From: Salisapilia sapeloensis CBS 127946
Lineage: Eukaryota; Protista; Oomycota
Reading direction: 5' to 3'
DNA: 58,165 bases
Assembly (NCBI GenBank): GCA_023334545.1
Contig: JAADVB010000108.1
Location: forward strand, 1-58,165
Below the pieces are notes generated by a model. The model was given only the letters and a program-made list of their open reading frames with translations. It was not told the DNA's origin and did no database searches. Positions 3,573 to 15,571 of this stretch are shown piece after piece; the first letter of the stretch is position 1; every line of letters begins with the position of its first letter. Position numbers and translations under genes: made by a program.

Positions 3573-5340
3573 CTATATTCCTGATCGCTTGAATGGTCCA
3601 CCTCCAACCCCAGCATCCACACTCGCTTCCTCCTGCTTTGTCGCTAACGACGTCTCTGCATTTGCACCCGACTGACCAGTCATTTCATTCGAACTTTCGA
3701 ATCGACCGCGATAAGCCCACAGCCCAAGTGCTGGGTTGGAAATGTAAAAGAACTTGCTTCCGTCACTCGCAGTATTCCATCCGTCTTTCAGTTCCTTGAT
3801 GTTATACTTCTTTTGCATTTCACTCAGATCAGCATACTGATACCCAACGCCTTCCACTTCCTTTCTCGTCAAGTGTCCTGGGCAGTAGGTAACATGGAAG
3901 CGGCCTTCAGACGATCCGTGGATCAAATGTGCAACGGCACTCAAGTTCCGCATCAACTCCCGATTGGCCTCGAGTTTCGCCAGCACCTCCTACTTAATCT
4001 TATCAGCTACTATACGTGGATGCGTTTTACATCAATACTACAGGTGTCGTGCGATAGCCATATTTCCGAATGAGTTCATCGATTCGGTCGTCTTCGCCAA
4101 ACTTGTGAACGCCTGGAGCTAAGACGATCAAGTCCCCTCCATCTGCAATCGCCATGCGAGTACGATAGATGCTCTTGTTACCAAGCCACGTGCTCTTAAA
4201 CTCATCCGGATCCAAGTACACGACAACTTTATCCAAAGGCGCGTCCAACAGTTCAAAGTTCACTTCTAACGACAGCTCTGCAGCCTTTAAAAAGCACTCT
4301 TCATCGTCTCCAACGAATACTCCTTTCGTCGCTAACTCCCCGTCAGGTCTGTCGATTATGTGATCAGTATCGGAATGCTGTAGGATGTACTAGACGGCGT
4401 ACCCTCTACCGATGACAGTCTGGATGTAAACTATCGGCAAGTTGGACAGAAAATGGGTAGACGCGTAGTTCAGGATGCGACGGAGAGGGTTGTTCGCTCG
4501 TCCCATCATCCGTTCCATGCCATAGACGGCTCCAATAAAATGCGAAAAGTTAATCGCTTCACTGCCACCAGCGCCGACAAAGAGGTTCTTATTAAAATTC
4601 GCCATCCCCATGACTTCGTGTGGGACTACTTGGCCTACTGACAGGATCAAGTCATGGCCTCCCTCCCATAGCTACATAAGGAAGAGGTGAGGTTACGATA
4701 CAGAATGGTAATAATGCTATATATACGAGTTTATTCAGTTGCGCCGGCCATGGTTCGTTCACCTTACCATCACTAGCTTCACGGACAAGTTCGGAGGGTA
4801 CTTGACCAATGGTAACGACTTCATTCCTGTGTAGTGAGAACGAGGTCAATTTATTAGTTTGAGTTTATTTCCTTTGATGCAATGATATAGTTTTAATTTG
4901 TAGCGGATACCTCCAATCGTGGACTCGGAAGAGGTCTTTTGGAATCGTTCCGTACATCTACGATCGAGTATCCAAAAGTTAAAAAGTAATTAGAAACAAA
5001 AAAGTAATATATCAATACTTTATCCAACTCCTCGTTTGTCATAGGAGCATGGGTACCTAACGCAGGTAAGACATCCTTGACAGCATCACCAAGGTATTCG
5101 TACGAAAACTGAGAGATTTCCCCAGATTTCCTATCTCGAGGTGTTTAATAGATGATTTTGTATGTAAATAATGTACAAGTACGAATGATATCTGGTGAAA
5201 TCGGGGGGAACGATCGCAGCCTTCGTATACTTGCTTCCCTTCTTCTCCTCCAACTGCTTGAATGCATCCTGAACAATCTCTCTCAACCGTTCGTCGGTAA
5301 TGACGGCATCCTTGCCTCCTTCTGCTGCGATAAGCACCAT
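3573..5340 (-). CDS. LarA-superfamily (DUF2088, lactate racemase-like) nickel-pincer-dependent racemase/epimerase, 7 exons
   Basis: Manual splicing of GT-AG introns joins the ORF fragments: MVLIAAEGG...IVPPDFTRYHS|KSGEISQ...LPALGTHAPMT|MYGTIPKDLFRVHDWR|NEVVTIG...|...GQVVPHEVMGMANFNKNLFVGAGGSEAINFSH...|...KSTWLGNKSIYRTRMAIADGGDLIVLAPGV...|...AHLIHGSSEGRF. PDxTR, ALGTH, HD and PH-x9-K-x15-H are LarA hallmarks. Confidence 0.85.
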
Positions 5341-6546
5341 CTTACTACCAAACGGAACGAATTGACACGAATGAGGACGCAACTTGAACTACGAATGACG
5401 TGGCAGAAACATTATGTTCACTACATAATCTACACTTTAGGCACTCATGTAAATGTAACGTTGCTATCCTTGACGAGCATCCAGACGAGTGTTAGGGTAT
5501 CTGCACAGATGACAGCTTGCCTAAAACTATGATGAGGCAGTACACACGACGAAAAATATATTTGTTAGCTTTGCTTGTAACAACATTTTGCACTATAGAC
5601 CCAAATGGAGGTTGAGAATTGAATGTTTATTTTGTTGATCGAGTATCTACGTCTTTCGTGATGAAAAAACAAGCTCTATCGTAGACTAAGACCGTCACGC
5701 ACAAAAGATTTTAAAGCTGATGTTAAGTATGTCGTTCTCTCAGATATACACAAGCACCGACTTCGATCATGAGACATTGCAGCATTACCGATACTAAGCT
5801 GCATAGAAACCTAGGACTTTATTGAGTTTTTTAGCATTGATGACCTTTAAAACCATGAGAGAAACCGCTTATATTGTATATTAGGTAGAAAATAAAGTAA
5901 AAGCACAGCTGTGACAATATGCAGTCAATAGATCTCTAGGTTACCGTATCGTTTCTATCGAATAACTAGATGTATCGGTTGTGTAGGGTATCTAAAACTC
6001 TAGAGAAGATAGTAAACTATTTGACTACGTAGTTTAATGTGTTGTGTACGCTAGACAGGAGTATATAAGTGGACCTTCACTCCAAGCACTCACTGGAACG
6101 TCATGGTAATAATTTATGAACATCAGTTGTCGTCACTTCCTGTTCTATCCATGTATGAGTTAAAATAAACTCATAAGGTGCACTAGCTGATAGGAGTAAT
6201 ACAGATAAATAAAATCACTCTCATACTGTCCATACAAACTACTCTACACAGATACTTTTGCATCGCTTGGTAGGATACTATGTTGAAGTATATAGTTTGA
6301 TTGGAAACTCGGACAATGGCGTAGGTATTGACTCTTCCCGTCGTCAGTGTTTGGAAATAGTAGGATAGCCGTGTTTCTTACAGATTAAGCTTGCGTGCCG
6401 AGACAAATTGTATGGTTTTATCCATAAACTCACTTGCGAAAGAAGTAAAAGTTCGTGCCACTATTAAGAATGAGCTGATATAGATTAATAGGCGTAGGTG
6501 AGATTGACAATGACTGCAAGACAGCTAGGAAGGATCTAAGATATAT

Positions 6547-12959: not shown

Positions 12960-14024
12960 TTAGTTGTTCGCGTACTTGTTACGCATGCCCAAGAGCGGGT
13001 TGTTATCGTCGTATCGAGGGAGAGCCTTCGGACGGTAATCCAGGATCTCATCGATACGAGACTTGATCTCTGGCGTGATCTTGTCGACAAACTCCAACGC
13101 CTTCAAGTTCTCTTCAATCTGCTGCACCGACTTGGCACCGAGGATCGTCGTGGACACACGCTCGTTCGTGACGCACCAGGCCAAAGCAAGCTGGGCCAAG
13201 GAGCATCCAACCTCCTTTGCAATCGGCTCGAGCTTTTGCGTCTTAGCAGCGTTCTCCTCCACGCCGGGCATGAAGGCTCCGAATGAACCGGTCTTACGGG
13301 ATCCTTCTGGAATTCCGTCTTTGTACTTGCCCGTGAGAACACCTCCCGCGAGCGGCGACCAGACCGTTAGGCCGTACTTGTACTTGGCGTACAGCGGAGC
13401 GTACTCGTACTCGACACGAGAGCGCTCGAGCATGTTGTACTGCGTCTGGTCAAAGCACGGACGGCATAGACCGAGACGGTCGGCGATCTCACACGCCTCG
13501 ATGATGTCCGTCGCATGCCACTCGCTCGTGCCCCAATAGAACGCATAGCCATGGTCAATCAAATAGTTCATACCTCGCACGATCTCCTCCATCGGTGTGT
13601 ATGGATCCGGACGGTGGCAGAAGACGAGGTCGACATAGTCCAATCCGAAACGCTTCAGGGATCCTTTCATGCCTTCGTAGACGTGCTTGCGGCTAAGTCC
13701 CTGACTGTTAGGTCCGGTCTTACCGGTACCGAACATGAGCTTAGTGCTGACGACCAGATCTTCGCGTTCCCAGAGTCCATCTTCGATTCCCTTCTGGATA
13801 ATCTGACCCATCAGGACCTCGGACTTGCCTTGACCGTAGATCTCAGCATTGTCAAAGAAGTTGACACCGTGTTCGTATGCTGTCTTGAGGATCTTGTATC
13901 CGGTATCAAAGTCCGGCATACCATCCACTGGCATCCAGCTTCCGAACGAGAAGCAAGAGACGAGGAGTCCAGTGTCTCCGAGGAATCGGTACTTCATGCC
14001 GTGGTTTCCAGTTGGGTTGGCCAT
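12960..14024 (-). CDS. Aldo-keto reductase, voltage-gated K+ channel beta-subunit (Kv-beta)-like, single exon
   Basis: MKYRFLGDTGLLVS, FFDNAEIYG, VSTK, DYVDLVFCHRPD, WGTSEW, WSPLAGGVLTGKY, LGAKSVQQIEEN. Start placed at ATG 14024, downstream of an INR/FPR-like motif. Confidence 0.92.
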   Translation of the reverse strand: MANPTGNHGMKYRFLGDTGLLVSCFSFGSWMPVDGMPDFDTGYKILKTAYEHGVNFFDNAEIYGQGKSEVLMGQIIQKGIEDGLWEREDLVVSTKLMFGTGKTGPNSQGLSRKHVYEGMKGSLKRFGLDYVDLVFCHRPDPYTPMEEIVRGMNYLIDHGYAFYWGTSEWHATDIIEACEIADRLGLCRPCFDQTQYNMLERSRVEYEYAPLYAKYKYGLTVWSPLAGGVLTGKYKDGIPEGSRKTGSFGAFMPGVEENAAKTQKLEPIAKEVGCSLAQLALAWCVTNERVSTTILGAKSVQQIEENLKALEFVDKITPEIKSRIDEILDYRPKALPRYDDNNPLLGMRNKYANN

Positions 14025-14059
14025 GTTGCTAGAGTTGTCGAGAAGTCTTTCGTAGCTCG

Positions 14060-14080
14060 ATGCAAATCGCGAAATGAGAC
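14060..14080 (-). promoter_or_regulatory. Oomycete INR+FPR-like core promoter element upstream of the AKR gene
   Basis: Minus strand reads GTCTCATTTCGCGATTTGCAT, resembling the oomycete TCATTYYNNAWTTY consensus, about 40-55 nt upstream of the ATG. Confidence 0.5.
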
Positions 14081-15571
14081 TTTCGAAGGATTTTTCGTAT
14101 CTTGGAGTGTGGGTCTTGATGATGTAAACAAAAAGAATGATGTGCTGTCCCATCTCATATGATGCATCTTTTTTTAACAAATTGCGCACTTAGTGCAGAG
14201 AGAGCAGCCAAATTCAAGTTCATGCATTTCGAAAGTGGAATGTGAAGCAAACCTTTTTATATGGCAAGGTCAAAGATTGCATTGTGCATGTGATAGTCTA
14301 CCAAGTCGATGAAGCACATTAAAATGTTGGAAGTATGGAAAATTACGGGCAAAATTATGCCGACATCGGTGAGTTTCTAGCTTACCATCCATAGGTGCTT
14401 TTCCGCTACAATGACAGCAATACACTCTTGATCAGTTGCTATGAATAAGTCATACCAAAAATGTCTGAAGTACACCAAGACGAAGAAAAATGTAGGTCCT
14501 ACTCATGCGAATGATCATGTCTTGACATTTGGATCAGACTACTTTCCTATTCACCAACGCTTGAACTATAGATATGCTTACAAAAGATAAAAGTGGCTAC
14601 GATGGATGTAGTTCTCACTCTAACCTATATGCATGCTGCATTCGCTTTCTCAAATGCGGCCAATAGACTTGTATTCTACGTAAGACTCTTTTCTCACACG
14701 CTCGTTATTTAAAGTACTCTTGCCGCCATCAGGAGCACTCGCAAGCGAGTAGAATGTGTCTTACTCAAATACCTGCAGCGGGAATATCTATCGTTTAAGG
14801 GTCAGCATCAACTTGCATGAACCTACATAAGTTGAAAATGAAGGATCCAACGACGCAGTGTCAATGATAATGTATAGTTCTACCCTTTAACAGTAGTAAG
14901 AACTCGGGGGTCTTTAATAATGTAGTTTGAGCTGCTTACAAGATGACAGAGTCTGATCGCAAGCCCACCAGTTTCTTGTGAGCATTGATAAGCAAATAAT
15001 GGTAAAGATGGCTGTTTCTACATTTCTATCTTCTTAACAACAAAGTTAGAGCATGCATACTCTCCATTTGAATACTTATGGCAAGTTTAGCAAATTCGGT
15101 CAATAATGCTTGCTCTGTGCAAAATGAAATATGTCTCGCGTTACATGAGCTACCAATCGATTTACTTTCCTGAACGGATACTCGAAAAAAGCGTAGAACT
15201 GGTAACGAGTACAAAGATAGTATCTTAGAACCCACGTGCTGTATCTACTGTACTCGAAAAGCTGAAGCAGCTAGCATTCCCTCAATCTTCCTGGATTAAA
15301 TGAATTCGAGTATCGGTTTCTCTGTTTGCACATGGACTACCAGCCTCCTATCAGGGTATCCAATGCGTCTTCTAATCACTACTGCATGTAAACGGTCTGG
15401 AATGTACAATACCTTTGCATGGGCATTGGCACGGCTGCAGTTACCGTATTCATACATATTTATTGCAAATTGCGAAATATAAACGATGTATTCAGTCATT
15501 AAAGCTCACAGCAGTTGGCGCAGTGAGTTTTATCCGCATCGGGCGCCAATAGCAAAACTTGTGCTATTTAT

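Follow-up and report, generated by a model that had tools for sequence, protein, structure and literature searches.

A spliced oomycete gene for a putative nickel-dependent hexonate epimerase, and candidate genes for its cofactor elsewhere in the same genome

The gene considered here lies on the minus strand, at positions 3573-5340, of a 58,165-nucleotide stretch of DNA from the oomycete Salisapilia sapeloensis CBS 127946 (assembly GCA_023334545.1, contig JAADVB010000108.1, positions 1 to 58,165), and this whole stretch, contig C91 of our searches, is called the window below. The locus is very probably an oomycete nuclear gene that is transcribed and spliced and that encodes an enzyme of the LarA superfamily, belonging to group 18 of the GntE branch and acting as a hexonate epimerase dependent on the nickel-pincer nucleotide (NPN), with the cofactor made in the same cell. 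Gene structure, transcription, family and residue conservation were established directly in this analysis, as was the presence in the genome of larB, larC and a probable larE. In the mechanism we favour the protein would most likely bind NPN through a conserved Arg, Lys and His and most likely invert C2 of a hexonate, probably interconverting D-mannonate and D-gluconate, by the proton-coupled hydride transfer of the family, for which two catalytic His residues, an Asp and a Lys would serve. Three separate genes on other contigs, larB, larC and a larE of the CXXC-C type, would supply the cofactor within the same cell. The gene itself would have come from bacteria long ago, and would since have gained introns that are now common to related species as well as a C-terminal tail specific to eukaryotes.

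A transcribed nuclear gene with six introns

The coding sequence, modelled from three reading frames, comprises 1410 nt (469 codons) in seven exons, beginning with an ATG at 5340-5338 and ending with a stop at 3575-3573, and its six introns of 52, 61, 84, 55, 54 and 52 nt all have GT..AG ends. Three public runs of one study (X1-X3) yield transcript-like contigs that match the window at 100% identity while omitting precisely the six introns, and a 1404-nt contig of another, related organism (X5), about 96% identical to the window, has the same exon joints. Contigs from which all six introns are missing can only originate from mRNA, so that transcription of the gene and its splicing in the modelled form are both shown; the seven-exon structure drawn from reading frames alone in the first-pass annotation had proposed the same. 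On the 5' side the contigs reach to 5376 (X1 and X2) or 5374 (X3), giving a minimum 5' untranslated region of 5341..5376; the first ATG is that at 5340, and orthologues begin at the same Met. On the 3' side the contigs extend past 3400.

Intron 1 (5131..5182) is skipped in the contigs of four runs and occupies the same position in three further eukaryotic contigs, L096-L098, that are taken up below. Introns 2 (4958..5018), 3 (4827..4910), 4 (4672..4726) and 6 (3990..4041) are likewise defined by the transcript contigs, as is intron 5 (4349..4402). The last of these varies among related species, the window and L098 (3019-3085) having it and L096 (3075-3082) and L097 (3047-3051) lacking it.

Identity to bacterial proteins reaches 80% in exon 6, and this might suggest that bacterial DNA contaminates the assembly or that a horizontally transferred fragment lies dead in it, but such an origin can for practical purposes be dismissed. 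The removal of six spliceosomal-type introns in the transcript contigs refutes it, the reading frame of the spliced gene is intact, and orthologues with the same introns are found on other eukaryotic contigs. The neighbouring gene is also of oomycete type. It lies 713 nt downstream on the same strand (1132-2859) and is an intronless gene for a BT1/folate-biopterin transporter of 575 aa, for which the nearest ESM Atlas clusters are Oomycota (score 1.00), in keeping with the oomycete host that had been supposed from the DNA letters. The GC content around the epimerase gene is about 45%. The X2 transcript contig continues for some 950 nt beyond 3400 and into the BT1 gene, which could be read-through, overlapping transcripts or a merge made in assembly.

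Family, active site and likely substrate

Exons were searched one by one and so the family scores are per exon. For every exon tested the best family in the NCBIfam search was NF052594, the "nickel-dependent putative hexonate epimerase" (NPN_18) that represents group 18 of the LarA superfamily. Exon 1 (5183..5340), with the start codon and the PPDFTR motif, matches positions 3-38 of the 411 positions of this model with 14.1 bits; exon 2 (5019..5130), with the ALGTH motif, matches positions 41-76 with 29.8 bits; and exon 4 (4727..4826), also seen in the transcript contigs, matches positions 94-126 with 25.5 bits. The stronger matches are those of exon 5 (4403..4671; positions 127-214, 150.3 bits), exon 6 (4042..4348; positions 218-317, 171.3 bits) and exon 7 (3573..3989; positions 319-410, 132.9 bits), the last of which encodes the C-terminal end of the enzyme core together with the tail specific to eukaryotes and includes the stop codon. 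The six exons are thus colinear over positions 3-410 and their bits total about 524 without exon 3, the cut-off of the family being 500. Exon 3 (4911..4957), which carries a VHDWR motif, is defined by the transcripts and is 47-87% identical to bacterial orthologues. In the ESM Atlas exon 6 finds only bacterial clusters of LarA_C fragments. The only solved structure matched by the exons is that of GntE2 from T. maritima (PDB 4NAR; phmmer, 30-38 bits per exon). Taken alone, exons 1 and 2 gave only chance matches in the PDB (Rob; TAL effectors) and these were discarded; the match of exon 1 to TAL effector structures at a phmmer E value of 1e-7 is an artefact that arises by adding up about 24 repeat matches, each below threshold and none significant by itself.

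The match of the exons to NF052594 together with the residues aligned to 4NAR bears out membership of the LarA superfamily, and all seven cofactor-binding and catalytic residues listed for the superfamily (PMC7583248) are present, as follows from alignments to 4NAR, made directly or by way of the bacterial orthologue L019 as a bridge. Three of these residues are the equivalents of the NPN-binding R75, K184 and H200 of LarA, and are found as the Arg of PPDFTR (5193-5191), the Lys of ANFNK (4590-4588) and the His of FSH (4542-4540), the last two within the stretch PHEVMGMANFNK...FSH. The other four are the equivalents of the catalytic D72, H108, H174 and K298, and are found as the Asp of PPDFTR (5202-5200), the His of ALGTH (5051-5049), the His of PHEV (4620-4618) and the Lys of TWLGNK (4176-4174). 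Through L019 the PPDFTR motif aligns with the DYTR of 4NAR, its Asp and Arg falling on D38 and R41, and LPALGTHAPMT aligns with LNASGTHRTMK of 4NAR, so placing the ALGTH His on the second catalytic His. The His, Lys and His of exon 5 align residue for residue with H154, K164 and H180 of 4NAR, with the H(+10)K(+16)H spacing kept. In GntE2 H154, which is followed by E155 and S156, is the catalytic His equivalent to H174 of LarA, and K164 and H180 are the equivalents of K184 and H200 (PMC7583248), corresponding in the window protein to the anchoring of NPN and the binding of Ni respectively. In exon 6 the Lys of GNK aligns with the catalytic Lys of 4NAR, within EVWTAGK. The motifs and codon coordinates pointed out in the first-pass annotation, and the ligand spacing it had emphasised, are all exact. 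Of the two His residues outside exon 5 that it had drawn attention to as motifs, that of ALGTH is the equivalent of His108, but that of VHDWR (4921-4919) is not among the listed catalytic or cofactor residues.

As to the substrate, group 18 is predicted to contain hexonate epimerases like the proven D-gluconate 2-epimerases GntE1 and GntE2 of groups 19 and 20, and the basis of that prediction is a signature of groups 18-20 formed by E-V/S after the catalytic His and a Trp in alpha-11 (PMC7583248). Both elements are present in the window protein, the first as PHEV (exon 5) and the second as TWLGNK (exon 6), and together with the name of the family they favour a sugar acid rather than lactate, an option that had been raised at the outset. 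The enzymes for which C2 epimerisation of D-mannonate and D-gluconate has been measured are LarAH15, GntE1 and GntE2. GntE2, a group 20 enzyme with proven D-mannonate/D-gluconate epimerase activity (PMC7583248), has the same fold family and aligned D38/R41, H154, K164, H180 and catalytic Lys, although it is far more distant from the window protein than the group 18 proteins are, has an ES loop in place of EV, and is represented in 4NAR by the apo form. The founder of the superfamily, LarA of Lactiplantibacillus plantarum (5HUQ), would share with the window protein the NPN chemistry as it does the H174-K184-H200 spacing, but gives no phmmer match to exon 5 or exon 6 and has a substrate loop with a bulky hydrophobic FF where the window protein has EV.

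The closest characterised enzyme appears to be LarAH15 of Phytophthora nicotianae, described in a 2024 report (J Biol Chem; PMC11770544) as a D-gluconate 2-epimerase with a Km for D-mannonate of 9.4 mM and a kcat of 111 per s, and as the first LarA homologue of a eukaryote to have its activity confirmed. Within the substrate table of that report it showed no activity on the first seven 2-hydroxy acids, from lactate to 2-hydroxycaproate. The same source places all eukaryotic LarA homologues on the GntE branch, notes genes for NPN biosynthesis in some unicellular eukaryotes, and proposes enzymes of the LarAH type as an oomycete-specific drug target. The suggestion that this clade might be poorly described is thus overtaken, a member of it having already been characterised biochemically. 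The host species differ but both are oomycetes and both proteins belong to the GntE branch, and the N-terminus of LarAH15 as encoded by its primer, MATLLFAEG, resembles MVLIAAEGG of the window and MPLFFAEG of L096 and L097. From this N-terminus and the placement of eukaryotic homologues in the 2024 report, LarAH15 is presumed to be an orthologue of the window protein.

Cofactor genes and points of doubt

The cofactor genes were looked for by family profile searches of the whole assembly (22.4 Mb, 1365 contigs). None of larB, larC and larE has a match on the window contig, as had been noticed for the window itself, but the dispersed pathway offered as one way out is supported by candidates on three other contigs, and neither a fused pathway nor a scavenged cofactor is needed as an explanation. 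The larC gene (Ni_insertion, PF01969) is found at C224:71623-73186 as four pieces covering Pfam positions 2-362 of 375, each above the cut-off, and has the usual N-terminus. Part of it (C224:72700-73000) encodes some 70 residues rich in His, in which H-x repeats abound (HNHAHDHSHSH..., ...HDHDHGHGHSHSHDHH) apart from a short interruption without His, and presumably this region binds nickel. The larB gene (NF033503) is found at C656:35726-36690 as four colinear pieces over positions 1-207 of 209, their scores adding up to about 187 bits (cut-off 175), and typical LarB motifs are visible in the reading frames there. A weaker match to the larB profile, in a 594-aa frame on C69, is probably a purine PurE/ADE2-type paralogue.

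The probable larE (TIGR00268) lies on C667 (93900-95400; locus L014:1429-2700), again as four colinear pieces, for each of which LarE is the best family. Its PP-loop reads SGGVDS, a very small exon supplies a CYYC pair, and PCLRSR follows further on. A CXXC-C pattern marks the catalytic, [4Fe-4S]-dependent LarE, as distinct from the sacrificial single-Cys LarE of L. plantarum (PMC9283937), and it is the former type that the C667 candidate seems to fit; the partner LarE of the founding LarA and the one predicted here would so differ. If larE is of the CXXC-C type, cofactor synthesis would depend on the iron-sulfur cluster machinery of the host. All three loci consist of short coding pieces split by stops or changes of frame, as in intron-containing nuclear genes, and their GC content of 45-50% is like that of the window.

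Several points weigh against the interpretation as a whole. The use of the cofactor, the substrate and the physiological role are inferred from sequence. The 500-bit cut-off of NF052594 is passed only by the sum of the exon scores, a rough substitute for a full-length score. Pfam Lar_N (PF09861), a domain here split over five exons, gives 13.9 bits on exon 5 alone against a gathering cut-off of 23.3, and has no match in a six-frame search of the whole genome, a weak result that is attributed to the splitting of the domain and the divergence of the GntE branch rather than counted against membership of the LarA superfamily. The pieces of the larE candidate total no more than about 111 bits where 150 are required, and all three cofactor genes are known here from genomic sequence, transcripts having been seen for the epimerase. 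UxaC, UxuA, a GntK-type gluconokinase (TIGR01313), a PfkB kinase of the type found in bacterial clusters and a NicO nickel transporter or permease were not found in the 22.4-Mb draft with these queries, and what the FGGY gluconokinase model picked up were generic FGGY kinases alone, scoring 147 bits where the cut-off is 648. The reason is either an incomplete assembly or a sugar-acid route and an uptake of nickel that rely on other proteins. Finally, a Km for D-mannonate in the millimolar range for LarAH15 means that the native substrate may differ.

Two of these points, the inferred use of the cofactor and the missing NicO-type transporter, would fit a repurposed protein that keeps the LarA fold without NPN, as a binding or regulatory protein for example. 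We consider this highly improbable. All seven cofactor and catalytic residues are retained, oomycete-like copies agree with one another in 87-92% of the core and with bacterial enzymes in 65-80% of it, the genome has kept larB, larC and a probable larE, and the presumed orthologue in Phytophthora is NPN-dependent (PMC11770544).

Rather more weight, although still as an unlikely alternative, is given to an NPN-dependent epimerase of the same family with another physiological substrate, be it another hexonate, a uronate-derived acid or an aldarate, in a pathway specific to these eukaryotes. The millimolar Km of LarAH15 and the partner enzymes not found in this genome speak for it, as does the extra conserved tail of the eukaryotic copies, and in the family survey hexonate is for group 18 only a hypothesis, with the possibility that group 19 prefers an isomer (PMC7583248). 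Set against these are the epimerisation of D-mannonate by LarAH15 and its inactivity on the hydroxy acids named above, the loop and alpha-11 signatures held in common with proven GntEs, and the bacterial orthologues that adjoin 6-phosphogluconate dehydrogenase and UxuA genes. Absence of partners from a 22-Mb draft, which may be incomplete, is also weak evidence. An epimerase acting on D-mannonate and D-gluconate remains the preferred reading.

In the genomic surroundings no sugar-acid gene adjoins the epimerase. An open reading frame for an aldo-keto reductase of 409 aa lies on the same strand at 12960-14189, about 8 kb away. Aldo-keto reductases that use the nickel-pincer cofactor were reported in 2026 (PMC13524815), and that of the window is presumed to be of the ordinary NADPH-dependent type.

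Relatives, age and meaning of the gene

Bacterial group 18 proteins occur in Bacteroidota, Ignavibacteriota, Calditrichota, Planctomycetota, Spirochaetota, Acidobacteriota and others, and fragments of them bear the PGAP label 'D-mannonate epimerase'. Their identity to the window protein is 70-80% in exon 6, 65-77% in exon 5, 50-67% in the core of exon 7 and 25-42% in exon 1, and they share with it the colinear exon matches, all the catalytic and cofactor residues, the EV loop and the Trp. In contrast to the window gene theirs have no introns, and the proteins examined end some 39 residues earlier, without the Gly-rich tail. At several of the bacterial loci examined the gene sits in a sugar-acid or pentose-phosphate cluster, with neighbours such as an SDR, a PfkB kinase, 6-phosphogluconate dehydrogenase, transketolase or UxuA, and this neighbourhood points to mannonate or gluconate feeding the pentose-phosphate pathway.

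Among eukaryotes, a word search with exon 7 returned many open reading frames of the size of the last exon, three of them on long eukaryotic contigs (L096-L098, GC 53-62%). Each of these three carries a whole epimerase gene, with introns 1-4 and 6 at the positions they have in the window and with core exons 5 and 6 that are 87-92% identical to it. A second eukaryote-like group is made up of metagenomic fragments, from a Tara scaffold and from JGI samples, in which exons 6 and 7 are continuous across their junction; on the contigs of JGI origin the adjoining genes are eukaryotic (zf-MYND, HMG box).

The C-terminal extension of the window protein, of about 39 residues (3576..3692), is present in 19 of the 19 other eukaryote-like fragments and in neither of the two bacterial orthologues of one alignment. 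The extension is noted also for P0001-P0031 and L096-L098, and is made up of a low-complexity linker rich in Ser, Thr and Ala followed by a conserved Gly-rich end, which reads DAGVGGGPF in oomycete-like copies (3617-3591 in the window), the majority of the fragments, with a GGVGGWKxPP variant in the four fragments of the second group. No mention of such a conserved tail was found in the literature on LarA homologues compared here.

Because five of the six intron positions are shared with three other eukaryotic contigs, and a tail confined to eukaryotes is shared as well, the analysis supports the earlier idea of an old and domesticated acquisition from bacteria. A quick tree of the exon 7 core (99 columns) puts the window in a clade of 16 eukaryotic rows, itself and 15 fragments (SH-aLRT 90, not starred), with the second eukaryote group placed apart and both lying among rows of Planctomycetota, Verrucomicrobiota, Acidobacteriota and Spirochaetota. 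This tree of the exon 7 core resolves no donor phylum and decides neither for nor against a single origin. A more speculative proposal, which we hold to be rather doubtful, is that the eukaryotic LarA homologues of the GntE type form one old clade with a functional Gly-rich tail and serve a sugar-acid route unlike the bacterial one from uronate to the pentose-phosphate pathway. There the tail may have a role in cofactor loading, regulation or the binding of a partner, and the different route is proposed on the ground that searches of the genome detected no partner enzyme of the usual kind.

The gene is a further member of a kind of enzyme already published in Phytophthora (PMC11770544), and so the finding is sound but ordinary; its practical value is confirmation and annotation, and current understanding is unchanged by it. 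What it adds is an oomycete with all four genes that a nickel-pincer enzyme requires, one for the epimerase and three for the cofactor (larB, larC and a probable larE), split up and scattered as ordinary nuclear genes. To this may be joined three small additions, namely the conserved tail confined to eukaryotes, a larE candidate of the iron-sulfur type, and a genome in which no canonical mannonate or gluconate partner and no nickel importer was detected with these queries, and these minor leads could guide work on how eukaryotes make and use a nickel-carbon cofactor. The four-gene set supports the published view that the epimerisation of D-gluconate and D-mannonate genuinely matters to certain unicellular eukaryotes.

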